A stretch of DNA of 64,000 nt from Octopus sinensis (GCF_006345805.1 NC_043011.1:33120464-33184463); one strand, 5' to 3'. Positions 7,206-59,782 are shown, numbered from the stretch's first letter. Notes: generated by a model from the letters alone, not told the origin. Numbers and translations: made by a program.

Positions 7206-8547
7206 GTATCAAGTCAAACGAAAGAAGATAAGGGAAAAACGGCACATTGATATGAAATTAACAAAACTTGACTAAATAATAAATGAAAAAAAAATCAACA
7301 TAATTAATAAACTCACCATGCAATTATAGAGAAGAAATTATTGAAATTAAATATTACTCATTTTACCCCATTTTAGACATCAATTTTTTTTTAAACTTGA
7401 AAATGATCAAATTAAACATTAATATGGGGAAAAAAATTGGCCTAGAATCCAACAGAGAAAAGAATAATGATTGTTAAAAAAACTAAAACTTTGTAACCTC
7501 AATATAAATCGGATCAAAGCTGAGGAAAAATTTTTTGAAAACAAGGAGCTGCCATCTGACTATGTCTTGAACAATCTCAACTTCAACAACAACAACTATG
7601 CTGACCAAGTTTTGCTTCCGAAGACGATGCAGCAGTACAAAATAACGATGTAATGCTTATAATACTTTAACCATTAGCATAGCTCACAGATTTCTCGTTA
7701 ACTATTTTAAATTCTCAAAGGCTTAAGATGGACCAGTGTAGACGCGAACCAGCCAACCTAAGTGCATGCGAGCGTCTGTTTCGTTTTATGTTTGCAAAAC
7801 TATGCACGTTTACGTGCATGCATTCCTTAACAGTCTGTACACTCTGTGAAGTTCTAGATCTCAAATCGCACGGTCGAATATTTCGGCTGGTTGGATTAAT
7901 CGATCGATCCTCATAATATATCATATTATATTATGTTCTTCTGATGAGCTAAGATAGCTCTTTATTATCGTTTTTTATTGATTATGTTTTGAATCATTTT
8001 ATTTCATCTTCATTTCACATCTACTGTTTTTTATTATTACCTTTTTAATATTTCAAAATTTTTTTAAAATTCTTTGAACAGTCTTTTTAAAATTTACGAA
8101 TTTATTCCATTCATTCATTTTTATTTCTCTGTTGTTTTATCCTTCAAAGTTTTCTCATGAAGCTTTATTAGTTTCGAATTTTTACTCGGGTACACATCTA
8201 GATCATCACCGGAAAATTTTCGTTTTTTTTTTCTACCCTACCTTTCTAGGACTTCGTTCTGTAAACCTTTCTTCCTTATTTAACAACTTTTACACTTTAA
8301 CACAAAATATTTCACTAAAAATACCAAAGAAGACCAAACAATACAGAAGAAATTCTTAAAACAAGGAAAACAAGCTGAAAAACCTATAGTATCATCACCT
8401 CTACTTTCTCATTTCAAACAAACGGCGGTCTGAGAGAGAGAGAGAAGAAAAAAGTTCGATTGAAATTGCATTTTCGTTTTACCCCAAACTATCTACTGTA
8501 ACTTTCCTTGTTCACCTTACTCGTGGGTTTATAAGAACACTGCAACC

Positions 8548-8659
8548 ATGTATATTGTAGGCTTAACAGGTGGTATAGCCTCAGGAAAGACTACTGTCAT
8601 GGATATGTTAAAGAATCTTCGTTGTAATGTCATAGACGCTGAAGAAATTGCCAACCAAA
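8548..8659 (+). CDS. DCAKD: Dephospho-CoA kinase domain-containing protein, coding exon 1
   Basis: [16 protein letters not shown] (CoaE P-loop) followed by donor gtaagt at 8660, phase 1. Confidence 0.9.
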
Positions 8660-11152
8660 GTAAGTCCTCCACCCTAAACTATACACCTTCCAACAACTGT
8701 TGTCAACACCCACATATATTTCTTTTCATAAATTACTTTCTCTTTGATATAAAAGATTTATTTTACGAGTGACTGTTTAAAGATATTCATTATTATTATT
8801 ATTAACACTACTTTCTAAGTTCAAATGCTGCTGAGGTCAGCTTTGACATTCGCCCTTTCAGGGTCGATAAAATAAGTATTAGTTGAGTACTTTGGTCAGT
8901 GTAATTGACTTCTCTCTCCTCTTAAAATTGCTGGCCCTTAGAAAAAACTATTATTTTATTATTAACATTATTGCATCATCACCGAAGACGGTTTTGTCAG
9001 TTAATTCCTTCCGAACCTTTTACCTTTAATGAAGTTTAAAAAAAAAAAGTACTAATAATACTAAACCCTCGAAACCTTTTATTTATTGTTGGACTATGAA
9101 GATATCGGAGGATACTTTTTATTATATTTCATAGTGAGTCAATGTATTTGAATCTATTTTTATGACCATAGCAATAGGCACAAACACAGTTATATTAAAA
9201 GTTCTGTTCATTCCACTGGGATAACATCTCATGGTGCTGAAAGGACTAAATACAAAAAAAAATCGCCGTCATTTCATGCTATTTTGACAACTGGTATTGT
9301 TTCGAATAAAGGAACAGCTATAGCTCTGGGTTTGTTCTCGTCGGCAACCTATGATCAAAGGCGTCATGGCCTTGACCATCACATCTTTTCGTGTGTACCT
9401 CAGGGGTTACGTTTTACTTAATGCGTGTGAATTGAGATTTGGCTGCTATTTCTAGCAGGTCGAGCGATCGTGTAGAGACTTTTTAAAAAGAAAACAGTAC
9501 CAAAAAATGTACTATTTTTGATATAAACCCACATGACAAGAACTAATCACTGTTTTAATCGATTTCTTGTTTGATTGGTTATTTAATCTTAGGTCAGCCA
9601 TGGTCAAGTGACTGATCATTTAGAGGCCCACCCTCGATGTCTCATACTATATATTAAATTGGTAACACTACAGCCCTTTTTCAATTGTTCACTAGAAAGA
9701 TATTTCAAATGATAGCAATATTCATATCATAATTTTCTAATGATTTAGTTGTCTTTGATATAGAACAACCTTCCTTTCGGATTAGCATTTTCGCCCTCTC
9801 TCTTAATGAATTTCTCTTAATCTCACAGCAATTCCCCAACTCCTTAGTTCATCATTCTAATATTTCTTTTCACAAGTCATATGTCCCCTCATTTATAATA
9901 GCATGGAAATGAGTGCGTGACATCCAAATGTTTCCAGTCCATTAAAAATGAGGTGGAACTAATATGTATATTCCGTCTGTTTTGGGTTTATTCAAGAAAC
10001 TTTCCTAGTGCAAGGAGTTTTATTTAGCTTTACATTCTAACTCAGAAATACAGTATTATTTTTCTTAATGGTGATAATAATGGTTACTGTTATTTTTATC
10101 GAAAATACTTCATAAAATTAAACTAAACTGCCTTCAGTTAGTTTTGAAAATCTTTGTCATTCGGGTGTGTACCTTACTGACTCAGCCCTTGCGTTTGTTT
10201 TGGGTTTCAGGGTTCAAAAGGTCAAATTTTTCATGCTATCTAGTTTATTTGTTGACAAAACCTGATTGCTGTCATTTTTTAAAAATTATTTTGTATGTCT
10301 GTTGAAACATCGTAAATGGAGAGTAAACCCAAGTAAATAAATATGAAAACGAAAGCTAAAATAATGTTCGGTGAAAATAGGATTGGCGTGTTAATTTTTC
10401 AAATAGTGTATATTTTTAAATGTTTCATTTTATACGATCGCCTGTTAAAGCTGCATAGTTTTTTTTTTTTAGTTGTTTATCGATGTAATTTCAAATCATT
10501 CCTCAATGTTTATTACGTTTATATTAATTCTTCACATTCTCTTCAACACTATCTTTTGACTTTGGATTTCTTTTTCAATCAAATCTTGAACCGTTAAATT
10601 CTACAAGACATTATGACCTTCACCTTTTGCCATTGAGTCACGTGGATTGACATTCAATCTACTAGAAATAGCAGTCAATTCAACTCTCAAATTATACCCT
10701 ACCATGCAAAAAAAAAAACAACAAAAAAACATGGAAGGACACACTGGGTAATGTTGTCCATAGTACGCTATCTGCCAAAAAAAAACCAAAAAAACCTGAT
10801 GATGATGACAATGCTTTGATCATAAGGTTTGATTAGTCAGCGCCGACTTAAAATTACAGACAATCCTTCTGTTTGATGTTTTGTTAAAATGGTACAATTA
10901 ACGAGAATTGGGCATTATTTCAATTACTTTTTTTCCACTGCTTTGTTTCAAATCTAAAGCATTTTATTATTTATTTTTAATTACTGTTGCCATTCATTGA
11001 ATTGTTTTTGTGTAGCCCGAGGTCAGCTCTGACCAAGCAGAGCCATATTGAAAAGCCTTCCAGTTGTGACCATCTAGCATATCAATGACTACATATAATT
11101 TCCAGTGCGTCCTATATATTTTTTATGATGGTAGAGTGTGATCTAAGGGAGA

Positions 11153-12480
11153 CTTGGGTGCTATTGCTAGCTACTAGAATGACTGCATAAACGCCTTCTT
11201 TGTAGGTTTGTTTCAAGGTCAGCTTGATAATATAAACCTGTGATCAAATGCACTTCAGCTGTGATCATCCCATCTTTATAGGCGTTTTCTTTCAGACGAC
11301 ATGAGCCATTATTGTTCTTCAGATATGTTTTGCATAGAGCTTGCACTAGTGGACCCTCATAGTCTGTTGGCCGGTAAACGTCCTGCAGTGCAAATTGTAC
11401 GAAAATTTTGGCATCTTTCGACGGATCTTTTTGGTTTGAACAGCAGTTTTTTTAAATAATTTCCACGTAACTAAACACTTTTAAACTTCGTATACTGGTA
11501 GAAAGTGTTTATAAAACATCTTTTTCTCTTGGCTTTATTGAGAAAATTCTATAGTTTGTAAGATATTTGTTGTTTTTCTTCTTTAATTTCTGCAATTTCA
11601 ACCAATCAATGACGTCTATTGAGGTGAAAACATTGTGCCGTATGAATATGCCCCTCGTTTAAGAAACAGATTGGGTTTATTTACATTTCTGAAGAAAAAA
11701 AGATACCCTTCCCCCTAACCCTAAAACAGATTGAAATGCAATAGATCGATACTAGGGTCATAATTATGGGTGACAATTTCATATGACACCGCTAGAAAAA
11801 ACTGCCGTTCAAACCGAAAAGATCCGACTTGGGTGCTATTGCTAGCTACTCGAATGACTGCATAGACGCCTTTTTTGTAGGTATGTTTCAAGGTCAGCCT
11901 CATAATATAAACCTGTGATCAAATGCACTTTAGCTGTGATCATCCCATCTTTATAGACATTTTCTTTCAGACGACATGAGCCATTATTGTTCTTCAGATA
12001 TGTTTTGCATAGAGCTTGCACTAGTGGACCCTCATGGTCTGTTGGCCGGTAAACATTGTCCTGCAGTGCAAATTGTACGAAAATTTTGGCATCTTTCGAC
12101 GGATCTTTTCAGTTTGAACAGCAGTTTTTTAAAATAATTTCAACGTAACTAAACACTTTTAAACTTTGTATACTGGTAGAATGTGTTTATAAAACATCTT
12201 TTTCTTTTGGTTTTATAGAGAAAATTCTATAGTTTGTAAGATATTTGTTGTTTTTTTTCTTCAATTTCTGCAATTTCAACCAATCAATGACGTCTATTGA
12301 GGTGAAAACATTCTGTGCCGTATGAATATGTCCCTTGTTTCTGAAGAAAAAAAGATACCCTTTCCCCCATCCTTAACCCTAACACTAAAACAGAATGAAA
12401 TGCAATAGATCGATACTAGGGTCATAATTATGGGTGACAATTTCATATGACACTGCTAGAAAAAACTGCCGTTCAAACCG
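11153..12480. repeat. Direct tandem duplication of about 670 bp, each unit carrying a small TIR element
   Basis: gacttgggtgctattgctagctact recurs at about 11153 and 11826. TIR-like ends cggatctttt.ggtttgaac.gcagtttt / aaaactgccgttcaaaccgaaa.gatcc. Confidence 0.9.
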
Positions 12481-12519
12481 AAATGATCCAATTTTAGCAC
12501 CTTTCGACAGTTTTATTCA

Positions 12520-14230
12520 GACAGTATTGATGCTTTGTTTCCTCATATTATCCATGCAGTCACCACACGAAACTTGGGGTAGCTGTAACCACTTAACCAA
12601 GTAACGATGCTTTACTACTTACTGAGGATGTGTTCTTTGCTGTCAGCCTTGGTTCTTCTTTCACATTATATCCATGATGATGCATTCTCTGCTTCCCCCT
12701 GGAGTTTGCAAATCACTGCTCTACTCACCTTTGTAAGTCTAATGCAAACCATATTGTTTAATGTGGGTCTAGTTACAAATTGTCATCTCATTTCTACAGG
12801 TAGCACCATGAGCTATCATCCTCGTGCCCCATACAGCTACTGAAGTCCTTCATATTTTAGGCCCTTCTTTTTATGTGCCTACTCCATGTTGCCTTTCCAT
12901 GGCACTATCAGCTCAACACACAAGACTACTTTTTTTTATTAAATCAGACTATACCACAATGTCAGAGTATTCTCTCAGAGAGAGAATCTCATCGTTTCCA
13001 GTTGAGATAATAACCCCCTGAAATTTTACCACTGCTTTGGGAATATCCATCTCCACAGTAAATTAGGTCTCATAGCTATCAACTATTTATAGAAAACCTT
13101 CCAAACATTTAAGCCTTTATTTCATGGGTATCCCTGCTGTTAATTACTCCTATGCACAGTTTTTCTTCTCAGTCAACCTGCCTATGATTCTGCTGCATCT
13201 CTTGTACACCCACAGTATACATTTGATAGGGAGTAATACTTTTTATCGCTTATTCAGTATAGCTTTATCTCTGATATAAGTAGAGTCTTGTCTTCTTTCC
13301 AGCTTAAAACTTTTGTCATTGCTTTGTTTACTTTGAGACTTTTTAGTTCTAGGTTTTGCTTCTTCATTTGGAATTTCTTTTTCAATTCTTTGACAAATTC
13401 AGCTCCAAGAACCAGGTCATCAGCATATAGATGTTCTTATAGATGACCAAGCATAAACTCCTCTCTTATGGCTTAGAAATAAACAAGAGAGGGCTGAGAA
13501 CTTGGCCTTGATTGACTCCTATCAGCATTCGTTTTGAACTCATTGCTAACTCTCATTTTGCTGACAGCATCTTTGTGGATGACTTGATTGGCTCTCAAGA
13601 CATTCATGTACACCTTTTCTTAGTGACTACCAAACCACAAAGTCTGGTACCCAATCAAAAGCCTTCTCCATATCAATATATTCTAAATATAGTGTGTTTA
13701 CTCTTAACCACAAACTTCTTCAATTGTCTCTCTAGGAAGAGAGTACTGGTAGTGCTCTGAACATTAATCCAAACTGCATCTCACCTAAGCTACTTTTCTT
13801 CCTAATTTGTTGTGCTATAGCTATTTGTATTTTCATAACCTGGTCCAATAATTTGATGCTTCTACAGTTGTTAATAATAAGGTTTCTCCTCTCTGATTGA
13901 TTATGTGAGCGACTAGCTTGTGATGTACTTCACTGGATATTTTCTATATCTTAGTAGTGATCTCTGGTTAGCCAACTACTTTACTTACTTTCATAGCCTT
14001 AATCACACGTTCAAAAATACAGCTGTTACTTCAGTAGCTGGTCTGTTTGTCTGTGTCTACATGGGATAAATTTGCTCACTTCCATGTGCATTCTCCACAT
14101 TCAGCAACCTTTCCTAGTAACATAGTAAAATTTCCATACTTCTTTCTTCTTGGGATCTGTGAAAGCAAGTGCATCACCATCATTCTATTCACACTTTTCA
14201 CTTTTCCTCAGTGACATAATCCTAGTTAAA
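12520..14230 (-). pseudogene. Decayed RTE-clade LINE RT remnant in DCAKD intron 1
   Basis: The reverse complement encodes DMEKAFDWVP (about 13650) and LYADDLVL (about 13420) amid stops and frameshifts. Confidence 0.75.
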
Positions 14231-16018
14231 CTGTATCTAAAATAAAGATGAGACAGCCACAACTGGAATGCCTTTGATCATTGAGCCTGCTAACTCTCTT
14301 AGGGATGATCTGAGGTTAGACAATGACAACAACACTGTCTTTGAATCATGAATAATACATTTGTTGGGGATCACATTTAGTTATTTGACTGACAAACTGC
14401 ATACCATGAATCTGTCTGATCAGAGCTGGCTTGGGGCTACACAGCAACATCATCATTTTATTTGATGGTTTGCTCATTCAGGATTGACCAAAATATATAC
14501 CACAGAATAACGTTTACACTAATTGCTTTTAAATTTCCTTTATACATCTCTTGAATATCTATTATATAAAATCCGTTCTGTGTGTGTCTTCCAGGATCTC
14601 AGGCATCCTCGATCCGATTGTGCTCAAATTTGGTATGTAGATACCAATGGTATCAGGGCATGTATAAGTCTTGAAAAAATTACAAAATCAATTCCAGGTG
14701 AGAATGTGATTGATAAAGCCGTGGGAACGTGCATTTGTACTTGCAAGTACATCAGCTGTTGAGATCAATTCTACGTGTATGTGAGAAAAATGCATGTGCA
14801 GTTTGCACAAAAAAAGCCGGCTGGCTTGAAATAATGCCACAAAATGCAGTATATTTAAGAGACCAAAAAAGTAAGATGCAAAAGAGATATTTTCTTCAAA
14901 CTTGGCATGAAGAAAGGAAAGACTATTTCTTTTTGCCTTAACTTCATTTAACAAAACCAAAAATTTTATTGAAATAAAGACATGCTTAATTATTTTTTAA
15001 TGAAAAGAAAACACTGATTGCTTTTTATTCAGCAGCTATGATTCAGCACCATCCATTGGACGGGCGGCGGGTGTTTTGCTCGTCTCTCATAAATTGTGTA
15101 TCTTTACACAACACTCTGTCTTGCTTACAAGACAATAGAATATTGCATGACACGACAATTCAGTGCATAGACAATTCAGCACAGGGCATCTTATTGACCT
15201 TGGGTACTATGCGTAGCTTTAATACTGAGATTGAAAGGCAGGAGCGAATTATGCCTACCTAATCTACAAAAAAATTTAATGTTTTACATTTTATGCATAG
15301 TAATCAGCGTAACCTTCATAATTTTATTGAATTAGGTGCATATTTTGCCAGAAAAGGAAAAATATTGCTATCAATCAATTTTATTCAGGGTAGGCACTGC
15401 CTACCTTGCCTACCCAGGCAGCACATCCCTGGTTTTGTATGGGTGTGTGTATATATGTTTGTTTTTTGCTGGTGTTTGTTTCATGTATATGTGTGCTTTT
15501 TACTTATTTATAGTTAATCTATTCTATGACTGCTGTGTTGGTAGGTTGCATGTCCATGTGTTTTAGATACATGACAAACACCAATATAATGTAATAATAA
15601 ATTACATTTATTACATGCACTGAATTGTTGATACTCCAGAATATTGAACTGTCCAACCCTTTTTTCTTAATCCTTTAATTGTGGAATTAAATTTTATTGT
15701 TATTCTGATAATGATGTTAAACATCTGCCAAAAATAATAAAATTGATATTTTCTGCAAATCGTGTTACCTCTATAAGCTTGGTCATTTATCATCATCATT
15801 ATTTAATGTCTGTTTTCCATGCTGGCATGGGTTGAAAGGTTAGACAGGAGCTGTTTTATATCCTGGTGTCAATGCTAAAGACTGAGCTATTTTAACTGGA
15901 TTATTTCAAGCAATTTATTTACTTATGTAATTATTAAATAATCAAATTTCACCGATTTCTTTTTAATATTTTTCTTTTTGTCATTTGAAAATCTATTTTT
16001 TTCTGTTTCAATATTTAG

Positions 16019-16222
16019 TTCTGAAACCTGGAGGAGCTGGATGGAAAAAAATCAAGAAATATTTTGGACCTGAAGCCTTTCTTGATAATGGTGAACTTAA
16101 TCGCAGGTACATTGCCAACCTTACATTTAGTAAACCTGAAAAAAATCAGCTCTTTATCATGTTGATCCAGCCCCTGATCCGGAGTCATATAATGTGGAAA
16201 GTCGTAAGGTTGTTTATCTGTG
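16019..16222 (+). CDS. DCAKD: DCAKD-like coding exon 2
   Basis: Acceptor tttag; (I)LKPGGAGWKKIKKYFGPEAFLDNGELNRR..LIQPLIR..ICG; donor gtaagt at 16223; phase 1/1. Confidence 0.9.
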
Positions 16223-16762
16223 GTAAGTACTCTTGTTTTCTTTGTACTATTTAGTTTAGTACTTCTTTCAGCTTTACATTCTGTGTTCAAATGCAACCGA
16301 GGTTGACTTTACCTTTCAGATGTCAATAAAACAATTGCCAGTCAACTACTGAAGTCAATGTTATTCTTGTGCCCCTTCCCCAAGAAATTGTTGGCTTTAT
16401 GTCAAAATTAGAAAGAATATACTTAGTTTAACACCAGGTCAGTGGATTGGTAGTATTGTTACAGCATCAGAAAAAATACCTTGCAGTAATTATTCCAGTT
16501 CATTACAGGGTCAGCTTTGCATTTCATTCTTTCAGGGTTGATAAATTAAATTCCAGTCAAGTTACTGGGTCAACTTAATGATTTGATTGGCTAACTATTT
16601 CTCCCAAAAGTTCAGGGTTCGTACTTGTGTTTGAAGCAATTATTTGGGTTAGTACCTATTTTATTAGGGTTTAAGACATTTTGGCATATCTGTTTTGGTG
16701 CTGCTTATTTGGCATCTCTGATTCGATGCTGACCTATCTGACATCAGACATTTATTACTCTT

Positions 16763-17155
16763 TACTCTTTTACTTGTTTCAGTCATTTGACTGCGGCTAT
16801 ACTGGAGCACCGCCTTAGTCGAGCAACTCGACCCCGGGACTTATTCTTTGTAAGCCCAGTACTTATTCTATCGGTCTCGTTTGCCGAACCGCTAAGTGAC
16901 GGGGACGTAAACATACCAGCATCGGTTGTCAAGCAATGCTAGGGGGACAAACACAGACACACAAATACACACACACACACACATATATATACGACAGGCT
17001 TCTTTCAGTTTCCGTCTTCCAAATCCACTCACAAGGCATTGGTCGGCCCGGGGCTATATCAGAAGACACTTGCCCAAGATGCCATGCTGTGAGACTGAAC
17101 CCGGAACCATGTGGTTGGTTAGCAAGCTACTTACCATACAGCCACTCCTGCGCCT
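16763..17155 (-). mobile_element. Full-length tRNA-derived SINE
   Basis: tRNA-like head (ggcgcaggagtggctgtatggtaag..ccgggttcagtc), internal (TA/CA) tract, and tail ..gactgaaacaagtaaaagagtaaagag. Confidence 0.85.
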
Positions 17156-19134
17156 TCTTATTTTAATATTTTTCTTATGCTCTCTGTTTACATGTGCAAA
17201 TGTATTTCCCTTTGTATATGAAGAGAGGGAAAATATTTATGTCAGGTGTGTTCAATAATTTAATTATGCTATCTCTCTATCTCTCCCTCCCTCTGTCTCT
17301 AAGTGTATATTTCTACATCATCGTCATCATCATCATCGTTTAACGTCCGCTTTCCATGCTAGCATGGGTTGGACAATTTGACTGAGGACTGGAGAACCAG
17401 ATGGCTGCACTAGGCTCCAATCTGATCTGGCAGAGTTTCTACAGCTGGATGCCCTTCCTAACGCCAACCACTCTGAGAGTGTAGTGGGTGCTTTTACGTG
17501 CCATTGGCATGAGGGCCAGACAGGCAGTACTGGCAGCGGCCACGCTCAAATGATGCTTTTTACACGCCACCTGTATAAGAGCCAGTCCAGTGGCACTGGC
17601 AACCACCTTGCTCGAATGTTTTTTCATGTGGCACCGGCACAAGTGCCAGTAAGGTTATGCTGGTAGCGATCATGCTCGAATGGTACTTTTTACGTGCAGT
17701 GTGCATATGTGTGTTTGCCTTCAGTGCCTATTAGTACTGTTCCAAAACCAATTTCAGTGTCCAGTCAGCTGTTCCAAACCACCAGCATCTAAACAGCAAC
17801 ACCCAGTTGTCTGGTTTTGATTTTATTAGCTATTTTCACTGTCTTCTACAGATACAGGCGTGTCAAAGTGGTTGGCATTAGGAAGGGCATCCAGCCATAG
17901 AAACCATGCCACAAGAAACAATCGGACTCTGGACAGCTCCCTGCTAGCCAGCTCCATGTCAAACCGTCCAACCCATGCCTGCATGGAAAGCAGGCATCAA
18001 ACGTGATGATGATGACATGATGATGATAATGGTTTTAAGGGACTGAAACCATTGTGCTCATCAGTTGTCTTTGTGTGGTGACACAGCCAGCATTATAGCA
18101 TAGGATCTGGTTCAGTGTTACATCTTGACAGATTCTTACTTGTGCATTACAGCACATGTGATGGGAGCTAAAACACAAAACAAGTGTGCCCTATATCTTT
18201 AGAATTGGATGTACTGAATATGAATAATGTTTGTGCATGTAAAATGTTCCAGGTTTTACTTTTGTCTTCATCTGTTGTTGTGGCAGCAAGCTGACAGAAT
18301 CATTACACGAAATGTCTTGGGGTAGTTCTTCCAAATTTTTACATTCTGAGTTCAGTTCCTGTGGGGTCAAAGGCTGCATGCAAGCTATCATAATCATTAG
18401 GATGTTGTACAAAATACCTTGGAGTATTTCTTCACCTATGGGATTAATTTTGTCTTTCATCCCTCTGGGTTTCATGTCAAAATGAAGTATTGGGATTATT
18501 GATATCAAGTACTGTGATTTTTAATATCAACTAACCCTTCCCTCCAAATTTGCTGGCCTTGTGCTTAAATCAAAAACCATTTTTCTATGATTATTAAAAA
18601 TAAAATACCTGTCAAGTACTGGAGATGACGGTATTAACTCACTCTCTTCTCTCAGAATTGCTCATCTTTTGCTTAAACTGGAGACTATTACTATTACTTT
18701 GTCATGTAGTGTAGATGAAAAATGCATGGGAGTATTTAGTTAGCAGTCAAGTCACAACAAGGACCTCAGACAGGTAATACTTTCCTTAAAATGTGTGCAG
18801 TTCCTAATGAAACTGATTGTTGTATGACACTAATTTTGCAAAGTATTCCCAACCTCTTTAAAAATTCTCTTGAAGTTTCAGTAGAATTGACCCTATTATT
18901 GTACAAGGCAGCAACCTGGCAGAATCATTAACATGCTGGGCAAAATGCTAAGCAGTATTTCATCCATCATCATCAGGTTCTGAGTTCAAATTCTGCAGAG
19001 GTCAGCTTCGCCTTTCATCCTTTCAGGGTCGATAAAATAAGTACCAATCATGTATTGATGTTGATGTAATTGACTACCCCCACCCCCAAATTTCAGGCTT
19101 TGTGCCTATAGTAGAAAGGATTATTATTATTATT

Positions 19135-19688
19135 GAGTGAGAGAGCAGTGCATGCCATCAAAGTGACACTGGGGTAAAATATACGAAGCTCAGTATACCC
19201 ATCATGACTACCTGTCTGATAAGGGTACACCGGGCACATGCATCACAACCATATGTGCGCAACATGGTGATCTCATATCAAGATAAACAGCTCATGACCT
19301 TGCAGGTCATGTCGCAGTTAGAATTTTCTTCTGGTCGAGTAACCCATCCCGCTTAAAAGGTCCCTGAATAAGGATTGTTTAAGGATGTTGAATGAAACAC
19401 CCATGTTTCCAGGGGTGAATTATTCAAACCCCAAAGAATCCTTCTCGACACATGGCTATGATGCTCCCCCACTACTTCTGCTCGTGATCAGAGATGCACA
19501 TAACGTCAGCCACTAAGGGACATGCTCAACTGGTTAGGGTCAAACAGCTGACAAGCAAATCTGTGGTATTGAGCAGAATATTTGCTGTAGCCCATCTTTT
19601 ATACCAAGACAAAACAATGTACATGATAACACTTCCAATCAGTTAAGATCAGAAGTCACGAGAACCACTGCCTGGTACTGCATCAGGG

Positions 19689-19690
<2 letters not shown>
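19135..19690. mobile_element. About 550-bp dispersed element embedded in (ATT)n, copy 1
   Basis: Near-identical to 45965-46496 with the same two ends (gagtgagagagcagtgcatgcc ... gtactgcatcagggca); ATT repeats on both sides. Confidence 0.85.
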
Positions 19691-19736
<46 letters not shown>

Positions 19737-20299
19737 CATCATCATCATCATTGCAAGGGTGGTGGACTGGCCAAATCATTAGAGCATTGGAAAAAATAAT
19801 TTTGCAGTGTTTGTTTCAATTACTTAGATACTGAGCTCAAATCCTGCTGAAGTCAACTTTGCCTTTCATTCTGCCGGTGGGTGGTGTTCGATAAAATGAA
19901 AGTACCAGTCGAGTACTGGAATCAAAGTTATCAACTATAGCACCTCCTTTCAAATTCCTAAACCTTGTACCTAAATCTGAAACCATCATCATCACATAAA
20001 AGTGGACCCATGATGGTGACAAGTAAAAGACAGTACACTCTGTGAAGTGGTTGGCATTAGGAAGGGCATCCAGCTGTAAAAACCATACCAAAGCAGAAAA
20101 TTGGAGCCTGCTGCAGCTCTCCAGCTTACCAGCTCCAGTCAATCTGTCTAACCTATACCAGTAAGGAAAACAGACTTTAAATCATGATGATGATGATGAT
20201 CTATTTTTTATGTTCTGAGTTCAAATGCCGCCAAGGTCAACTTTGTGTTTCATCCCTTCATGGTTGATGAAAAAGTACCAGCTGAGCACTGAGGTCAAG

Positions 20300-21880
20300 G
20301 AACTCGCATTGAGGGCTGGGAAGAAGATGCAGTCTTCAGAAGTGGTACCATCAGGCGGTGTACACTGTGAATCCTAATCAGCTGGAGTGCTTCTTTCAGC
20401 ATCTACTGCTGCACACTGTCAGAGGTCCTACATTATTCACAGGCCTTCGAAGACACACTGGGGGAGTCTGCATGACCTACACAGAAGCCTACGCCAAACA
20501 TGGACTATTGGAAGATGATGCTCACTAGGACCAGACTTTGGAGAAGTCAGCAGAGCACCAAGTCAGCTGTGCCAGATATTTTCTATCATGTTGATGACAT
20601 GTGGCTTGGGTGAACCTCTCCAGCTTTGGGTGACCCACAAAAGCAGCATGGCAGAAGACATCCTAGGAAGGATTCAAAGGCAAACCTCATTCAATAATGC
20701 CATTTACAGTGAGGTATTACTTGACCTGCACACTCGTGCAAGCTATGGGAGGTTAAGGCATTGCCACATTTGGTCTGCCTCAACTGGAGCAGGCAGTAAT
20801 CTCGCAATTGAGTACCTGGGAGAAATCAGCTATGACACCGAGGAAATGATGGCGTATGTAGCTGATAATGAACACAATCTGATGGAGGACCAACTGGGTG
20901 TTTATAAGACCATTATTTCGAGCATTGAAAGTGAAAGAGGAAGTCTTTTCTTTTTGGATGCTCCAGCTGGAAGTAGCAAGACATTTGTCATCAACTTTTT
21001 TTCTGGCTAAACTGCACCAAATGAAACGCATTGCCATGGCAGTGGCATCAGGTGGAATAGCTGCAACTCTGCTAAGTGGTGGCTGCACAGCTCATTCCTG
21101 TTTCAAACTCCCTTTGGACCTGTCCAAGAAAGAGAAGGCAAACTGCTGCATCAGTCGTGGTTCTATAAAAGGCAAACTTCTGGGTGAATGCAGGTTGATC
21201 ATCGGGGATGAGGCGACAATGAGCCATAAGGTTTCCTTTGAAGCTTTTGACATGGCCCCTCAGGATCTGAGACACATCATTAGGCTCATGGGAAGTGCCA
21301 CAGTCTTGCATGCAAGAGACTTTAGACAAACCCTTCTTGTGGTTCCAAAGGGGACAAGAGCTGACGAGGTAAATGTCAGCATAAAGTCCTACCTAGGGAG
21401 CAGTGTGCAAAAGCTGAGACTTGCAACCAACATGAGAGTGCAGCTCAGTGGTGATGATGCATATAGAACCTTTTCAAAGCAACAGATGGACATGGGTAAT
21501 GGCACTTAGGTTGGCAAGAAGGATGGCTGGGTAAAGTTGCTTTTTGGACATATGGTATCTGATTTAAAGGAACTAATAAATAAGGTGTTACTTAACCCGA
21601 GAAATCAGTTTACAGATCACAGCTGGCTGAAAATCCGTGCCATTTTAGCTCCAAAGAATGGGGCAGTTGATGATTTGAACATTAAACTTCAGGTGAGCAT
21701 CACATCTACAATTCCATTGACATTGTACTTAACATTGATGAAGCTGTGAATTATCCTGTTGAATTCTTAAATAGTCTAACACCACCCGGCCTGCCACCTC
21801 ACAACTTGTACCTCTAGATTGGGCACCAGTGTTACTTCTTTGAAACCTTGATCCACCAAAGTTTTGCAATGGCACACTAC
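20300..21880 (+). pseudogene. Decayed Helitron Rep/PIF1-like helicase fragment
   Basis: FFLDAPAGSSKTF (degenerate Walker A), AVASGGIAATLL.GG.TAHS.FKLP, IIGDEATM, DFRQTL and AILAPKN spread over frameshifted ORFs. Confidence 0.85.
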
Positions 21881-22082
21881 TTATAATAAAGAATTTTAAT
21901 TTTGTTTAATTTTGATTAATTTTTTGGGGTTGTTTGGACTTCTTTTTCTTTTACCCAAAAGAATTAGTCATTTAACTCAGTGATTCGCAAAGTGACAAAT
22001 ACCTCTCCCACCCTGTCTTTTATCTTTTACATGTTCTAGTCATTGACTGTGGCCATGCTGGGGCACCACCTTGAAGGGTTTA

Positions 22083-22334
22083 ATAAAAAAATAAATGCGC
22101 CCTTTTAAAGCCTAGCCAGGCTCATGGGCCCGGTTTCTATGGCGTATGTGTTCCCCAGCTGGACGGGACGCCAGTCCATCGCAGCGTTACTCATTTTTGC
22201 CAGCTGAGTGGACTGGAGCAACGTGAAATGAAGTGTTTTGCTCAAGAACACAATGCATCGCCCGGTCCAGGAATCGAAACCACAATCTTCCGGTCATGGT
22301 GCTGACACCCTAACCACTAAGCCACGCGCCTCCA
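22083..22334 (-). mobile_element. tRNA-derived SINE nested in another SINE, with a 16-bp target-site duplication
   Basis: caccttgaagggttta at 22067-22082 and 22335-22350. The minus-strand head has A box (tggcttagtgg) and B box (ggtttcgattcc). Confidence 0.85.
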
Positions 22335-23534
22335 CACCTTGAAGGGTTTAGTCAAACAAATTAACACGAGTACATTTTTTAAAAAATCTGGTACTTATTC
22401 TGAACTATAAAGGTTTCTTTTGCTGAACTGCTAAGCTTTGGGAATGTATACAAACCAACACTGGCTGTCGAGTGGTAGGAGAAGACTGACACAATGTTTA
22501 TCCATTGGAGCAATGAGGATTGTTCAGTCATCCTAGGGAATGACTGATGCATGACGGTTTTATTTCAAGGGTTGCACACTGTCAACCTCATTATCTCATC
22601 CATGACCATCTTCAATCCAGCGGCAAGACCAGGTCATGATGACTGGGGATGGAGATGGATGCAGTGGATGAGCATAATGTCTTACTGCTGTCTGCCCTCA
22701 ACAATGTATAGCTGCAGCACCTTATTTTTCATTGAACCATAAAGGTGTCTTATGGATCCAGGTACATAAGCTCTAATATACTAATTGACCCATAGCTGGG
22801 ACCCTGGCAAGTGCTATTACACTGGGTTAGAGTAGAGCTGAGAACAATAGTGGGTAAGTGGTGGTTTCTCACTCCTCAAAACCCTGGAGCTCCTGAAGCA
22901 GAGTCCCACTACCTGATGCAGTTTAAAGGTCATACCCAAGACACACACACACACACACACACACATGGACTTCCACACAGACTCCATCGATTGGCCTGGG
23001 GCTATTGTAGAAGACACTTGCCCAAGGTGATGTGCAGTGGGACCAAACCTGAAAACATGTTGCTAAGTGAAATTCTTAACCACATAGCCATACCTGCATC
23101 TATATTCTTTATTCTTTTACCTGTTTCAGTCATTTGACTGTTGCCATGCTGGAGCACTGCCTTGAGGGGGTTTTAGTTGAACAAATGTACCCCAGGGCTT
23201 AGCCTAGTGCTTATTCTATCAGTCTCCTTAGGGATGTAAATACACCAACACCAAATGTCAAGCAGTGATGGTGGGGACAAACACAGGCACAAAGACACAC
23301 ACATAGATATATGCGTATATATACAACGGGCTTCTTTTGATTTCCGTCTTTGTAATCAACTCATGATGTTTTGGCTCAAGGAGCCATGCAGTGAGACTGA
23401 ACCCAGAACCATGTCATTGCTAAGCGAGCTTCTTAACCACAAGGCCATACCTGCACCTGTATGTTACTTTTGTAATATTTCTTCCATTCTTTCTGCAATC
23501 TAACAATTTCTTTGAATGTCTCCTTTCATTCCAG

Positions 23535-23622
23535 GCCATCAATTTGTTATAATTAACATTCCATTGTTATATGAAAGTAAGATGATGATGTCCTACATGA
23601 AATACACAATTGTCGTTAACTG
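23535..23622 (+). CDS. DCAKD: DCAKD-like coding exon 3 (88 nt, not in the ORF track)
   Basis: Acceptor cattccag; (G)HQFVIINIPLLYESKMMMSYMKYTIVVN(C); donor gtaagg at 23623; phase 1/2 links exons 2 and 4. Confidence 0.9.
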
Positions 23623-25626
23623 GTAAGGCAACCCATATTTTGATTTCCCTCTTTGCAATTTAATAATGTCCTTCATTGTTTTGGGGTTTTTACAGTATTT
23701 TTCTCAATGTTGATGTAAATGGGAATTATCATTATCACTTAACATCCCTTTTTGTCTTCCTTTTCATTTTCCTTTTGTTTCCCTTTTTGCTTTCCCATTT
23801 ACATGCTGGCACAGGTTGGAATGTTCAATATGAAGAGATATTTCAGAGGGCTATACTAAGTTGTAATGTCTGCTTCAATAGGGTTTTAACAGTTGGATGC
23901 CCTTCCTAATGCCAACCACTTTACAGAGTGTACTGGGTGCTTTTTATGCGGCACCAGCACTGGTATGGTCATCAAATGCCCACAAGACAAATCCCTTCAA
24001 TAGAGTAGGGTATAGAATTGAAGGATAAGAAACTTAGGTAGGCCAACAAGAGCTGGTGTCTAGCTGAAGGTTATGTTTGGAAATTTTAGGTACAAATGGA
24101 ACATACATTTTCAGTTAGATTTCTGTATCCCTTTAGCATTTGGATTAGCCATATCTGGCTCAAATATTCTACATGTTTATGATCGAACCAGCCAGATCTG
24201 TCTTCTCATATGTATCATACAATGGCATTCTAAAAGTAAACAATCACATCTTCCTCTTACATCTGTTTTCTATGCTGGCATGGGTTGGAATGTTTGACTG
24301 AAAACTGGTAAGCTGGAGAGCTGTACCAGGTTCCAATCTGATTTGGCATGGTTTCTACAGCTGGGTACTCTTCCTTCCACCAACCACTCCAAGAGTTTAG
24401 TGGGTGCTTTTTACATACCACCAGCAAGGGTACCAGTTATGTAGCACTGGCATCAGACATGACTATGATCTCACTTGGCTTGACAGATCTTCTCAAGCAT
24501 GGTATATCACTAAAGGTCACTGCCTCTGTGAGGCCCAACATTCGGAGGGTGTTTTTCTATGTGCCACCACTACGGGTGCCAGTTACACGACACTGGCATT
24601 GGCCATGACCCTAATCTCACTGGACTTGACAGGTCTTCTCAAACGCAGTGTGTCACCATCAGCCTTAGTCACTTGTAGATCTCGGTCGTAGAAATTTTGA
24701 AGCTAGGAGATAAAACCTGAATAATTCAAAAGAATGTGACTCAATAAGCTTTATATTTGACATTTAATAATGCTAAGGGGTTCTACAGTAAACATCTTAA
24801 CACTTTTGTTACCATATTTCAGTTGAAATGCACTACCTTTGTTTTTGATAATTTTGAAAATGAGGTAGAATTTAATAAACTAACTTTGTCATTACTAAGC
24901 TAGTGTTTGGGAGATAAATTAGCATGGAATTTTGATGGAAGATTTTAATTTTGATCACTTTAAAGCAAGAAGTTTGTATCATAGAATCTGGGACAGTCTT
25001 GGGAGAGATTGGTACCAAAATGGTTAAATAGCAGCAATTGTAGGGATTTGAGATTTCATTTTTGTGAATTTTGCCTTGTCTAAAAAGTATTTCTTTTTTT
25101 ACATAACAGCAGGATATGCATTAAAGAAGGAACATTCACTATAATAATTACTAATTTAATGCAAACTCATCATTATCATCATCGTTTAACATCTGCTTTC
25201 CATGCTGGTATGGGTTGGACAGTTTGACATGGAGCTGGCTAGCAGGGAGCTGTCCAGACTCCAACTGTCTGTTGTGGCATGGTCTCTATAGCTGGATGCT
25301 CTTCCTAATGTAAAAAAGAAAAAAAAAATAATTATATAAAATAAGAAGAATCTTTCAAAATGCCTAAAATATATCTGAACAGTAAACACAGCAGTACAAG
25401 ATAGTTCTTAGACTCAGGTCTGTTATAATCCTTGGTACTAATACACTATGACAACTGAGTTAATTTTCAGATATAAGCATTTGAGATTGTGTCACATGAG
25501 CACTTTCATCATTAAACAACATCAACAACTGTATAATTAATACATGTCAAAGGATTTTTTCATCTGAGCTTTAACTAACCATGTTAGTGTGTTTGAGTCT
25601 TTTAATGCATATTTGAGCCCAAATAT

Positions 25627-27363
25627 TAGTATGCATTTGAGCCTAGCTGTTAGTATGCATTTGAGCCTAGCTGTTAGTATGCATTTGAACCTGGCTGTTA
25701 GTATGCATTTGAACCTGGCTGTTAGTGTGCATTTGAGCCCAGCTGTTAGTATGCATTTGTGCCTAGCTGTTAGTATGCATTTGTGCCTAGCTGTTAGTAT
25801 GCATTTGAGCCTAGCTGTTAGTATGCATTTGAGCCTAGCTGTTAGTATGCATTTGAGCCTAGCTGTTAGTATGCATTTGAGCCTGGCTGTTAGTATGCAT
25901 TTGAGCCTGACTGTTAGTATGCATTTGAACCTGGCTGTTAGTATGCATTTGAACCTGGCTGTTAGTGTGCATTTGAACCCAGCTGTTAGTATGCATTTGT
26001 GCCTAGCTGTTAGTATGCATTTGTGCCTAGCTGTTAGTATGCATTTGAGCCTAGCTGTTAGTATGCATTTGAGCCTAGCTGTTAGTATGCATTTGAGCCT
26101 GGCTGTTAGTATGCATTTGAACCTGGCTGTTAGTGTGCATTTGAACCTGGCTGTTAGTGTGCATTTGAGCCCAGCTGTTAGTATGCATTTGTGCCTAGCT
26201 GTTAGTATGCATTTGTGCCTAGCTGTTAGTATGCAATTGAGCCCAGCTGTTAGTATGCATTTGTGCCTAGCTGTTAATATGCATTTGAGCCTAGCTGTTA
26301 GTATGCATTTGAGCCTAGCTGTTAGTATGCATTTAAGCCTGGCTGTTAGTATGCATCTGAGCCTGGCTGTTAGTATGCATTTGAGCCCAGCTGTTAGTAT
26401 GCATTTGAGCCCAGCTGTTAGTATGCATTTGAGCCCGGCTGTTAGTATGCATTTGAGTCTAGCTGTCAGTATGCATTTGAGCCCAGCTGTTAGTATGCAT
26501 TTGAGCCTGGCTGTTAGTATGCATTTGAGCCTGGCTGTTAGTATGCATTTGAACCTGGCTGTTAGTGTGCATTTGAACCTGGCTGTTAGTATGCATTTGA
26601 ACCTGGCTGTTAGTGTGCATTTGAGCCCAGCTGCTAGTATGCATTTGAGCCCAGCTCTTAGTATACATTTGAGCCCGGCTGTTAGTATGCATTTGAGCCT
26701 AGCTGTTAGTATGCATTTGAACCTGGCTGTTAGTGTGCATTTGAACCTGGCTGTTAGTGTGCATTTTAGCCCAGCTGTTAGTATGCATTTGTGCCTAGCT
26801 GTTAGTATGCATTTGTGCCTAGCTGTTAGTATGCATTTGAGCCCAGCTGTTAGTATGCATTTGTGCCTAGCTGTTAATATGCATTTGAGCCTAGCTGTTA
26901 GTATGCATTTGAGCCTAGCTGTTAGTATGCATTTGAGCCTGGCTGTTAGTATGCATTTGAGCCTGGCTGTTAGTATGCATTTGAGCCCAGCTGTTAGTAT
27001 GCATTTGAGCCCAGCTTTTAGTATACATTTGAGCCCGGCTGTTAGTATGCATTTGAGCCTAGCTGTCAATATGCATTTGAGCCCAGCTGTTAGTATGCAT
27101 TTGAGCCTGGCTGTTAGTATGCATTTGAGCCTGGCTGTTAGTATGCATTTGAACCTGGCTGTTAGTGTGCATTTGAACCTGGCTGTTAGTATGCATTTGA
27201 ACCTGGCTGTTAGTGTGCATTTGAGCCCAGCTGTTAGTATGCATTTGAGCCCAGCTGTTAGTATACATTTGAGCCCGGCTGTTAGTATGCATTTGAGCCT
27301 AGCTGTTAGTATGCATTTGAGGCCAGCTGTTAGTATGCATTTGTGCCTAGCTGTCAATATGCA
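25627..27363. repeat. 24-bp minisatellite (gcatttgagcctagctgttagtat), about 72 units, in DCAKD intron 3
   Basis: Seen directly. A period divisible by 3 produces the long (CILTARLK)n and (VSMHLSLA)n ORFs. Confidence 0.97.
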
Positions 27364-27516
27364 GGTTTGAGTTTGTGTTAGCATGTGCTTGGGTCCGTGT
27401 GTATATGTGTCTGTGTGTGCTTGTTTATGATTGGGTTTATTATTACTTCTGCCTGAATAAGTTACTGTCAGAAGTGGTTGCAGCATGTGTAACTCTATCT
27501 TCTCTAACCATTTCAG

Positions 27517-27802
27517 CACTGAAAACCAGCAGGTTGAACGGCTCCTGAAACTAGGTGAAATTACAGAAATGGAAGCCATGTCTTGGATTAAAATTCAGAT
27601 GAACTTGTTCAAAAAAAGTGATCTAGCCACATTCATCGTTGACAATAGCAGCAGTCGTGAGTACACACAAGGACAAGTGGAGCGTATTGTCTGTCTGTTA
27701 CGTGCCTCGAAAGCCCAGTGGAAGTCTCGTTCAATTTTCTTCCTTGGCTTTGTCTCCCTGTCTGTGGCAGCAGCTGCTGTTTACTACACTAAGTTTAAGT
27801 AA
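27517..27802 (+). CDS. DCAKD: DCAKD-like terminal coding exon with C-terminal hydrophobic anchor
   Basis: Acceptor catttcag; TENQQVERLLKLG..IQMNL..FIVDNSSS..IFFLGFVSLSVAAAAVYY; TAA at 27800-27802. Exons sum to 112+204+88+286=690 nt (229 aa). AATAAA occurs downstream near 27967. Confidence 0.9.
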
Positions 27803-32335: not shown

Positions 32336-32728
32336 CAGCTAGCCTCGCCTGGCCCCCGTGCCGGTGACACGTAAAAGCACCATCCGTTTCGTGGCCGTTT
32401 GCCAGCTCTGTCTGGCCCCCGTGTTGGTGGCACGTAAAAGCACCATCCGTTCGTGTCCGTTGCCAGCCTCGCCTGGCCCCCGTGCCGGTGACACGTAAAA
32501 GCACCATCCGTTCGTGGCCGTTTGCCAGCTCTGTCTGGCACCTGTGCGGGTGGCACATAAAAAGCACCCACTACACTCACAGAGTGGTTGGCGTTAGGAA
32601 GGGCATCCAGCCGTAGAAACACTGCCAGATCTGACTGGGCCTGATGAAGCCTTCCAGCTTCACAGACCCCAGTTGAACCGTCCAACCCATGCTAGCATGG
32701 AAAACGGACGCTAAATGATGATGATGAT
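32336..32728 (+). mobile_element. 3' fragment of the RTE LINE (3' UTR repeats + (ATG)n tail), inverted relative to 32858-35788
   Basis: Reverse complement of about 32870-33250; ends ..gctagcatggaaaacggacgctaaatgatgatgatg. Confidence 0.85.
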
Positions 32729-32857
32729 ATCAGCTGAAATTGCGAGGATGATCCGGTTCTTGACTGAAGATTGGAGGCTTCGAATGTCCCGTCCCTGTTT
32801 TTTTGTATCGTCTTTAAATGTTTTGCGTTCTTGTCCCAGTTTGTATTTTTTTACATA

Positions 32858-47354: not shown

Positions 47355-48199
47355 TAGCAGAATTGCCCGGCGTTGCTCGGGGCTGAATTGCTTGAAAGTA
47401 CTGTTAATGATTGCACTGAATTATGCTGATTATTCAGGCAAATATTGATATAAGTTTACGCTGGGAGATAAGGACTTAACGATCAAACGTGTGCCATTGC
47501 ATTGTTTTGGGGGAACCAAATTTCTGATGAGCATTATAGGGGCACCGACTTTAAGTTTGAGAATGTGTGGTGTTAGTCCGGGGTGCTCAAAGGAATTGAG
47601 TACCTCTATTGGATAGTTGATGACGTCCTGTGGGTCAGGAGTTGTATTGATAGACTGATATACATAGACTTCCCCAGGAATGAGTTTTAGCATTTCATCA
47701 TTAATATGGTGAACAGTTTTATTCATCGGGGCGAGTATAGCCTTTTGGCCAATCCAATCCATATTCTGATAATTAGCTTGTAGATCTTGGAACACTGCAT
47801 CTCTGAGATCAGAAGGCGTCTTAACAATGGTACAAATGGAATCGAAGGCAATATTACCATTTTCATCCCCTGGTATTTTGCCTTCGCCAAGTGCAAGGAG
47901 GGTGTGAGGAAATGCTGCTGATGTGATATTACGTCGCATATGAGCACGCATATTGGTGTGAAGTTTGAGAGTTACTTCCCTTTATTTAAAAAATATGCAT
48001 TAAAATGGGAGAAAATGATGGTAAATTATTTGTAAAATCGTAGACTCATCGTAGACGCGCGCTAATACCCAGAAGTGCTCGATATGAATCACGACTATAA
48101 GATACCCGGTTTTGGTTAAACTGCATCGCAAAATGTGGGAGTAGTTAGGAATCTAAATCGGAGTAGACAGACACACAACCTTTCTTTTATATATAAAGA
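47354..48199 (-). mobile_element. Internally deleted Helitron carrying a PIF1 helicase C-terminal fragment
   Basis: Same TC / hairpin-CTAG termini as 38635-39019. The internal ORF 47430-47951 has AILAP.N, LKLKVGAPIMLIRNL and CNGTRLIV. Confidence 0.9.
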
Positions 48200-50208: not shown

Positions 50209-51267
50209 CCCTTTCGTTACTATATTTCTGACCAAAATACACCCCTTATGTGTTTCAATTATTTCTAACGTAATCATAAATTTAGTCTGGTTTCATTAAA
50301 CAACTATAACTTTTTTATTTATGAATATATTAATCTGATTTTTGGAAGATAATTTAGTGAAATGTTCTCAACCAATTCTATACTATAATTTTTGTCACAA
50401 AGTGACTCTAATTGCAGGTAGATACAGGTAAATTCAACAATATATAAAATTATTAAAATTTTGTTCAAACATCGCTATAGAAAATGGGTTATTAGCTAAT
50501 ATTCAATTGGGTATACAACAAAATTTTACGATAGAATTTGTTATTCTGGGTAACTTTCTAATACCCATAATAATATTTATGGCAAAATAGGCCTTAATTT
50601 CATTTAAGGTTGTGGGAAATAACAAACTATCGTTTCTTTCGCTTTGTTTAGGTTGAGCGTTCGTTTCCGCCGTAATGATTTCAAATAGGCTCATTCGAAA
50701 AAGTAAAAAGAAATAGTCTAAGGCTTTACTCTTCTGGGAAAGTCTGTGGCTTGGTCCAGTTTCTTCAGAGAAATCACCGAAAGAAACAGTTTTTAAATTT
50801 TCACTCCATTCAGGAGCCAAATCATTTTCTTTATCGCTGTCGGAGATCTCAGATTCACTGTTTTCACTTTCGGAAAATGAAACATCAGATTCATTATCAA
50901 ATACCACATGCTTTTTTTTTCAGTCATAGAGTTAGATTTATGAAGGTCTTCAGTAGAAAATCCTTCGAATTCTGACTCGCTGCTTGATATAATGAAATTC
51001 GTATCCATTTTTTGTCAGAATTACAAATTTTGAAAACACAATAGGAACAAATTTCGGAAAAAAATCTCCCATAATTCACAGAATTAAAATTACACTTCGA
51101 TTTTTGTACAAAACTGTAGTTGAACTGTTTACGAAGTATAATTCGTGTTTTCACGAATGTTCTAAAGAAATTTACTCTGATATTCTCATTTAAATATGAA
51201 TAGGTAAATTCGGGCGGCTTGGTCACATTAACCAAAGTTTTTTTCGGGCGGTTTGGTAACGAAAGGG
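50209..51267 (-). mobile_element. Internally deleted piggyBac transposon
   Basis: TTAA at 50205-50208 and 51268-51271; 12-bp TIR ccctttcgttac/gtaacgaaaggg; frameshifted acidic N-terminal transposase fragment (..LFEIITAETN..EIKAYFAINIIMGI..). Confidence 0.92.
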
Positions 51268-59478: not shown

Positions 59479-59782
59479 CCACGTTGCTCATCTCTGGACA
59501 CATGAGCGAGACAAGTGTGGAAATTAGAAAGCAATCAACAAACAATAATAAACAAACAAAAAAGAAATCAAAACGAACAACCAAACAAATTTAGCTGCAA
59601 TATATCGTTTATTGTTATCAGTTTTAGGTTTATATAATCATCATTTTATAATTTTAATCATTATTTCATTATATATAACTATTATTATGAAATAAATTTA
59701 ATCATGTAGTCAACATGATTTTCTTTGAGTAGTAGTAGTAGTAGTAGTACCACCACCACCTCATGATTGGGTGTTTACTTAC

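Follow-up and report, generated by a model that had tools for sequence, protein, structure and literature searches.

Background

The closest described relatives of the gene reported here are the animal DCAKD proteins (human Q8WVC6, Drosophila Q9VI57; PMC9311062), the bacterial dephospho-coenzyme A kinases of the CoaE family (E. coli, structures 1N3B, 1VHL and 1T3H; Legionella, 4TTP; M. tuberculosis, Rv1631) and the dephospho-coenzyme A kinase (DPCK) domain of COASY (mouse, 2F6R). In mammals DCAKD is considered a putative monofunctional kinase of the mitochondrial outer membrane or the cytosol (PMC9311062, PMC9974488), and the literature on coenzyme A (CoA) assigns the DPCK step of the main pathway to COASY (PMC9974488). 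We analysed 64,000 nucleotides of the Octopus sinensis genome (GCF_006345805.1, NC_043011.1:33120464-33184463; hereafter the window, in which positions are counted from the first letter) that contain, on the plus strand between 8548 and 27802, a DCAKD gene in which several residues that hardly vary among other animals have been replaced. The gene is already annotated in RefSeq: XP_029645946.1, 'dephospho-CoA kinase domain-containing protein [Octopus sinensis]', is identical to the protein encoded in the window.

Like the animal DCAKDs, the octopus protein is about 230 amino acids (aa) long and carries an N-terminal P-loop and a C-terminal hydrophobic tail anchor, and it shares 40-46% identity with the DCAKDs of molluscs, arthropods and hemichordates; what sets the octopods apart is that they alone replace D32, R36, R80, N84, H88, D113 and R147, and in some species R158. 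With bacterial CoaE it has in common the predicted fold and the residues K14, D30, R66, P89, the PLLxE motif, Q140, R143, Q162 and the DN pair ending at N178, whereas it has a Glu for the catalytic Asp, a Gln for the His of the HP motif and a Leu for R144 of E. coli, and the eukaryotic tail anchor is an addition. The DPCK domain of mouse COASY likewise has the same fold (TM-score 0.79) and shares the P-loop, the first Asp of the DxD motif, R66, E119, R143 and Q162; unlike octopus DCAKD, COASY keeps D32, R147 and R158, carries a fused PPAT domain and has no C-terminal anchor. The general concept of kinase-fold pseudoenzymes offers a further comparison. In such proteins, as here, the fold and the nucleotide-binding motif are kept, conserved active-site positions carry substitutions and purifying selection maintains the gene; the octopus protein differs in retaining most of the residues that mutagenesis of a homolog has identified as essential. 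A literature search turned up neither a degenerate or pseudoenzyme protein in the CoaE family nor any discussion of a cephalopod DCAKD.

Replaced and retained residues in octopod DCAKD

Column counts were taken over 131 other animal DCAKDs, next to a second set of 117 homologs, and the octopod coding sequences were rebuilt from the genomic loci of O. vulgaris (exons 2-4 twice), Argonauta hians (on two contigs) and O. bimaculoides (partial). The E. coli and M. tuberculosis CoaE sequences that served for numbering were checked against PDB alignment text and against the residue numbers given in papers, respectively. Column 32, the second Asp of the DxD motif and the position of the catalytic base (D33 in E. 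coli, D32 in M. tuberculosis), is Asp in 131/131 animal DCAKDs and in 117/117 of the homolog set, and Glu in all octopods (E32, codon GAA, 8641-8643), with the carboxylate kept. At column 36, corresponding to M. tuberculosis R36, which contacts dephospho-CoA in docking, 126 of the animal sequences have Arg, four Lys and one Gln, and the octopods have Asn (N36, AAC, 8653-8655). Column 80 is Arg in every other animal and Asn in octopods, and column 84, Asn in 129/131, is Ile or Val. The His before the hinge Pro (column 88, 131/131; H89 in E. coli) has given way to Gln in Octopus (Q88-P89, with Q88 encoded by CAG at 16168-16170) and to Leu in Argonauta (L88-P89); neither a His nor an aromatic residue is thus kept there. 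Column 113 is Asp in 130/131 animals, Val in E. coli and Asn in octopods (N113, AAC, 23555-23557).

The lid deserves separate mention, as the preliminary description had the Arg equivalent to E. coli R140 as lost. This essential lid residue, R140 in both E. coli and M. tuberculosis numbering, is R143 here (27539-27541); it is Arg in 131/131 animals and is retained in the octopods. The lid Arg that is missing is a different one, equivalent to R144 of E. coli, R145 of M. tuberculosis and R220 of COASY: column 147, Arg in 130/131 animals, is Leu in O. sinensis and O. vulgaris, Gln in O. bimaculoides and Met in Argonauta, and O. sinensis reads L147-G148 (L147, CTA, 27551-27553). The change in the AMSWI motif is present in the window (W158, TGG, 27584-27586; Arg in 130/131 animals) but is private to O. 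sinensis, with Arg in O. vulgaris (CGG) and O. bimaculoides and Cys in Argonauta. Retained in the octopus protein are K14, T15, R66, L116, E119, R143 and D177-N178, including the acceptor-binding PLLxE motif (P115-L116-L117-Y-E119) and the Asn that contacts the adenine of ATP (L114, E117 and N175 in M. tuberculosis).

The replacements first noticed in the window are thus real, and octopods are alone among the animal DCAKDs in carrying them; R36N, R80N, N84I and G25R extend the earlier list. D32E, R36N, R80N, N84I/V, H88Q/L, D113N and R147L/M/Q are common to Octopus and Argonauta and fall in columns that are 96-100% invariant elsewhere (n=131). When deviations were counted at the 45 columns with at least 90% conservation, Argonauta had 14 and O. 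sinensis nine, against 0-5 in other animals and 0-2 in other molluscs, and among 144 diverse representatives of the family that were scored for 14 key residues none loses as many as the octopods do.

One animal DCAKD has Gln and Met at columns 147 and 158. It is probably Megaselia abdita 'dcakd.2' (P0033); if so, an insect has lost the lid Arg as well, in a duplicated copy of the gene. A homolog of 520 aa (P0198), suspected to be a COASY-type fusion, turned out to be a bacterial MazG-CoaE fusion.

Evolutionary rate and selection

Tajima relative-rate tests yielded 39-64 octopod-unique substitutions, against 10-28 in other molluscs, and most of the 50 comparisons reached p<0.005; the other molluscs were clock-like among themselves. 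Evolution along the octopod branch was 2-4 times faster than along the other mollusc branches, and the octopod stem has a length of 0.24 in a neighbour-joining (NJ) tree. Because of the column counts, the comparison with the 144 representatives and these relative-rate tests, we conclude that the seven changes are an octopod-wide state that lies far beyond chance, and no quirk of a single assembly.

Between Octopus and Argonauta the nonsynonymous divergence (dN) is 0.22-0.24 and the synonymous divergence (dS) is saturated (>1.5), which gives a dN/dS of about 0.15 or lower. As a consequence of the saturation the NG86 and YN00 methods fail, and dN was used together with LWL85 and maximum-likelihood bounds. 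Across this divergence the frame and the splice sites are undisturbed, and exon boundaries and intron phases are the same in all rebuilt octopod loci. Compared with O. bimaculoides, over 160 codons (exon 2 being absent through an assembly gap), there are 8-11 nonsynonymous and 8-9 synonymous codon differences and dN/dS is 0.23-0.48, a within-genus ratio that is based on some 20 substitutions and taken alone is not clearly below 1. The earlier view that the frame is maintained agrees with the intact frame at saturated dS and with the ratios within Octopus; octopod DCAKD is kept under purifying selection of moderate constraint.

Within the octopods E32, N36, N80 and N113 are fixed, and columns 84 (I/V), 88 (Q/L), 147 (L/Q/M) and 158 (W/R/C) are variable. 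Because the latter four differ among octopods, this suggests that the former constraint on them is gone. Relative to O. vulgaris and O. bimaculoides, three nonsynonymous changes are derived in O. sinensis, namely R158W, E187G and R194C (27584-27586, 27671-27673 and 27692-27694), two of which are C-to-T changes at CpG, and only three synonymous changes separate O. sinensis from copy A of O. vulgaris. This hints at a weak constraint on exon 4, or at a variant of the sequenced individual.

Structural model

The O. vulgaris protein, 98% identical, served as a stand-in for that of O. sinensis in structure modelling, as it did in the exhaustive database scan described below. An AlphaFold2 model based on an alignment of 60 sequences had a mean pLDDT of 95.2 and a pTM of 0.88, with strands and helices in the expected order and a long predicted C-terminal helix (201-228). 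The best 30 Foldseek matches in the PDB were all dephospho-CoA kinase chains (E about 1e-16), with TM-scores of 0.8-0.9 when normalised by target length. By this model, the three-domain P-loop kinase fold of CoaE (core, CoA domain and lid) is predicted to be fully retained.

What the replacements may mean for catalysis

The roles of the side chains were drawn from mutagenesis and docking studies of M. tuberculosis CoaE and from a paper on Entamoeba. In the M. tuberculosis enzyme, D32A has almost no activity towards dephospho-CoA and no reaction could be measured for R140A (PMC3019153); in docking, D32, R36 and H88 contact dephospho-CoA, as do R66, R140 and Q144 (PMC2765170). In a further study K14A abolishes activity, and mutations of K14, S15, R145 and N175 impair it, R145A markedly so (PMC13629385). 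In our alignment K14, S15, R145, N175 and L114 of M. tuberculosis correspond to K14, T15, G148, N178 and L116 of octopus; the second lid Arg occupies column 147 in most enzymes but column 148 in that of M. tuberculosis. Among the columns conserved in all characterised DPCKs that were compared, only 147/148 has been lost without a conservative replacement. In addition, three or four positive charges have been removed around the site for a substrate that bears a pyrophosphate.

The preliminary description had taken catalysis to be lost or altered. Loss was an overstatement, as R143 is kept, D32E is active in M. tuberculosis, and COASY and E. coli CoaE themselves vary at other changed columns; an altered or reduced activity stays plausible. 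As the Asp base, the His of the HP motif and the second lid Arg, three features typical of the family, are absent, we did not file the protein as an active EC 2.7.1.24 enzyme.

Our preferred explanation, to which we would give a probability of roughly one half, is that the gene is an octopod ortholog under selection with an intact ATP site and a remodelled acceptor pocket and lid, in which activity is probably weakened or acceptor preference shifted. A burst of substitutions would have struck DCAKD before the split of Octopus and Argonauta, affecting the acceptor pocket (D32E, R36N, R80N, N84I/V and H88Q/L), D113N and, in the lid, R147 and later R158. The P-loop (K14/T15), the lid residue R143, D177-N178, R66, L116, E119, the fold and the membrane anchor have been kept, and purifying selection has maintained the gene since. 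The protein would still bind ATP at a membrane surface, and its acceptor site would be short of several positive charges and of the His that contacts adenine, so that the canonical phosphorylation of dephospho-CoA may be weakened or its specificity shifted. The essential kinase step would presumably be supplied by COASY.

A number of points weigh against this explanation. The presence of COASY in octopus is an assumption, the within-genus dN/dS has the limit given above, and O. sinensis may hold a further copy beyond the window, as in O. vulgaris exons 2-4 are duplicated, with the copies about 66 kb apart behind one exon 1. The contact roles are docking-based. M. tuberculosis CoaE D32E has a kcat/Km of 0.0904 against 0.0503 for the wild type (PMC3019153), and because this variant is fully active the change from Asp to Glu at column 32 is no evidence of inactivation. 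K146, which adjoins the lost R147, is conserved in all octopods and could substitute for it, and the lid Arg of M. tuberculosis is itself shifted one position relative to column 147. The kinase domain of mouse COASY (2F6R) has His, Met, Thr and Trp at columns 36, 80, 84 and 88, which shows that these four columns are not a universal requirement for DPCK activity, and E. coli CoaE has Val at column 113 and Ile at column 158. Entamoeba DPCK1, characterised in recombinant form, apparently has a Trp at the His column, as judged by a numbering offset (PMC6284149). Columns 36, 80, 84, 88, 113 and 158 are thus invariant within the DCAKD orthogroup and not across functional DPCKs.

These observations lend weight to the view that octopod DCAKD is an ordinary, competent dephospho-CoA kinase, in which Glu would act as general base, K146 would stand in for R147 and the other changed columns would be dispensable. 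We take this as a real possibility, although we lean against it. The kcat/Km of M. tuberculosis D32E, 1.8 times that of the wild type, the residues by which mouse COASY and E. coli CoaE depart from the DCAKD consensus (columns 36, 80, 84, 88, 113 and 158), the Gln found at the His column in four bacterial CoaEs and the purifying selection on the gene all favour it. So does the retention of every residue whose mutation is known to damage a CoaE, with the exception of the second lid Arg (the equivalents of K14, S/T15, L114, R140 and N175 are kept). However, an ordinary kinase is hard to reconcile with the simultaneous alteration, on one branch, of seven columns at which 126-131 of the 131 animal DCAKDs agree, and with the loss of three to four positive charges near the pyrophosphate-bearing substrate. 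Four of the changed columns now drift among octopods, which has the look of a released constraint and not of a new optimum. Neither column 147 nor column 148 holds an Arg, and M. tuberculosis R145A is markedly impaired.

A true pseudoenzyme, catalytically dead and retained at the membrane for some other task (such as nucleotide-dependent scaffolding, sensing or regulation), would draw on the same replaced residues and the same acceleration as a remodelled acceptor pocket does. It would also fit the drift of former key sites under overall purifying selection and the strict conservation of the P-loop and the tail anchor. We nevertheless consider it unlikely. The residues that mutagenesis found essential, K14 and the equivalent of R140, are present, as is the carboxylate of the base, and a dead enzyme would be without precedent in the CoaE family as far as the literature search goes. 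We know of no binding partner or non-catalytic role for any DCAKD.

Orthology and copy number

The preliminary description had also considered that the gene is a diverged paralog and that the genome holds a canonical DCAKD at another place, which we now take to be very improbable. Downstream of DCAKD, the window and Argonauta both have a minus-strand VWD/VWA gene as the next gene. In the window three exons of this VWA-domain gene (59775-60104, 61856-62095 and 63345-63557, together spanning 59775-63557) serve as the synteny marker; they are colinear with the Argonauta gene (815 aa, VWD/C8/TIL/VWA), with 64-77% amino-acid identity. When the canonical DCAKD of Pecten was searched against annotated proteins, including four octopod proteomes, no cephalopod was found among the best 120 hits, all of at least 46% identity, which came from bivalves, gastropods, a chiton, annelids, arthropods, hemichordates, vertebrates, cnidarians and Trichoplax. 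A second canonical DCAKD, looked for in annotated octopod proteins, was not found either. When 1.84 billion cluster representatives were scanned exhaustively with O. vulgaris DCAKD as the query, there was nothing between 46% and 92% identity, and the closest non-cephalopod matches were DCAKDs of molluscs, arthropods and hemichordates, not COASY or bacterial CoaE. The DCAKD orthologs of squid, cuttlefish and nautilus that would date the burst were sought in the protein searches and the NJ tree, and none was found. Because of the synteny with Argonauta and the lack of a cephalopod among the canonical DCAKD hits, the gene in the window reads as the octopod DCAKD ortholog, and it is the sole gene of the DCAKD type found in annotated octopods.

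What could still speak for a paralog is that the searches covered annotated proteins only and that duplication does occur at the locus. The two O. vulgaris copies of exons 2-4 (L003, OX597831.1, 17490-24391 and 84023-94611) are intact and share 94-98% DNA identity; they are annotated as separate products (CAI9736035 and CAI9736036) and may represent either a segmental duplication or retained haplotypes. Octopod-type residues are present in both of them, which argues against a paralog. The window ends about 29 kb short of where a second copy in O. sinensis would begin.

A decaying or silent gene, or one whose canonical residues are restored by A-to-I RNA editing (by which coleoids recode many proteins), can be set aside: the three derived nonsynonymous changes on the short O. 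sinensis branch and the absence of a transcript-derived copy of octopus DCAKD from the protein collection would fit decay, and N113 (AAC), the sole changed site that editing could revert, is convertible to Asp, but four species have kept the frame of 229 codons, the splice sites and the intron phases intact at saturated dS, and an enumeration of all edits showed that A-to-G changes cannot restore D32, R36, R80, N84, H88, R147 or R158.

Gene structure and other elements in the window

The coding frame of 690 nucleotides joins four exons on the plus strand into 229 codons and a stop, with GT/AG borders at every intron, in line with the gene model first proposed. Exon 1 (8548-8659; codons 1-37 and one nucleotide) contains the ATG start, the P-loop, A31-E32 and N36 and ends at a GTAAGT donor; in tblastn it is 100% identical to O. 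vulgaris and 73% to Argonauta. The Walker A or P-loop codons G8-T16 (8569-8595) are intact, with K14 and T15, and the G/K/S-T pattern is kept in 116/117 homologs and in the octopods. Exon 2 (16019-16222; codons 38-106, partial at both ends) has an AG acceptor and a GTAAGT donor and encodes the CoA-binding helical domain with N80, I84 and Q88-P89 (70% identity to Argonauta in tblastn). Exon 3 (23535-23622; codons 106-135, again partial at both ends) carries N113 and the retained P115-L116-L117-x-E119, and exon 4 (27517-27802; codons 135-229, stop TAA at 27800-27802) carries the lid with R143, L147 and W158, D177-N178 and the tail anchor. The latter (27725-27790, residues about 205-226) is followed by a basic TKFK end; within it the hydrophobic stretch 208-226 has a mean Kyte-Doolittle hydropathy of 1.84, and the anchor is thus present as described earlier. 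The motifs that had been quoted were all recovered, i.e. GGIASGKT (8-15), IDAEE (E32), LIQP (Q88), IINIPLLYE (N113), RLLKLG (R143 and L147) and AMSWI (W158). Membership of the DCAKD/CoaE family is borne out by the RefSeq identity and by the match to the Pfam CoaE profile PF01121 (151.9 bits, E 1.9e-44, gathering score 27), in which residues 2-181 align to profile positions 1-177 of 180. Solved bacterial dephospho-CoA kinases match the protein in sequence searches with E 1e-20 to 1e-24, and the DNA of the window is about 97% identical to O. vulgaris chromosome OX597831.1.

Several annotated octopod products differ from the rebuilt genes. An apparent loss of exon 2 in O. bimaculoides proved to be an assembly gap (L004, CM046618.1, 7434-7971, with a run of N at 7817-7917). 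RefSeq XP_052830494.1 of this species (284 aa) runs on through intron 1 and leaves out exon 2, because that exon falls in the gap, and UniProt A0A0L8GU84, of 155 aa, is another partial product. In Argonauta the annotated protein, of 243 aa, includes splicing to an additional 3' exon (L001, 21819-22101 and 24208-24267); unspliced, exon 4 ends in frame in an Octopus-like ...YYAKTK-stop, for a product of 228 aa. The Argonauta protein is encoded on two contigs that show four synonymous differences.

The introns and the downstream part of the window contain repeats and mobile elements. Intron 3 holds a 24-bp tandem repeat, ATTTGAGCCTAGCTGTTAGTATGC (25611-27363; 73 copies, 92% match), that recurs in copy B of O. 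vulgaris and in O. bimaculoides; two open reading frames (ORFs) in this intron, of 680 aa on the minus and 593 aa on the plus strand, are artefacts of the repeat. PIF1-like helicase fragments, probably Helitron-derived, were found at 20588-21509 (plus strand, in intron 2, split over two overlapping frames; PF05970, E 6e-33) and at 47430-47951 (minus strand, with a Pif1 2B domain). An uninterrupted reverse-transcriptase ORF of 658 aa lies on the minus strand at 33809-35785 (RVT_1, E 3.5e-32, and a weak PHD-like match), adjoined by GC-rich tandem repeats of 61/122 bp (32341-33761), and is likely a young non-LTR (long terminal repeat) retrotransposon. A piggyBac-type transposase fragment (DDE_Tnp_1_7, E 9e-8) is located at 50503-50907 on the minus strand.

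Implications

As it stands the finding is a single-gene curiosity that brings no new system. DCAKD is conserved from placozoans to humans, and what it does next to COASY is not well defined; the octopod lineage offers a natural experiment in which the acceptor pocket has been rewritten and the ATP site, the anchor and the frame have been kept. More speculatively, and in our opinion doubtfully, this may be the first natural protein of the CoaE family that has abandoned the phosphorylation of dephospho-CoA and yet stayed under selection from before the divergence of Octopus and Argonauta, as a membrane-anchored ATP-binding pseudoenzyme or as a kinase for a less negative acceptor, in which case octopods would make CoA with COASY alone. 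If the kinase activity has been lost, DCAKD must have a second function on which selection can act; if octopod DCAKD is still active, it would show which of the 'invariant' residues are dispensable. Either outcome would help to interpret DCAKD, a gene that recurs in human association studies.

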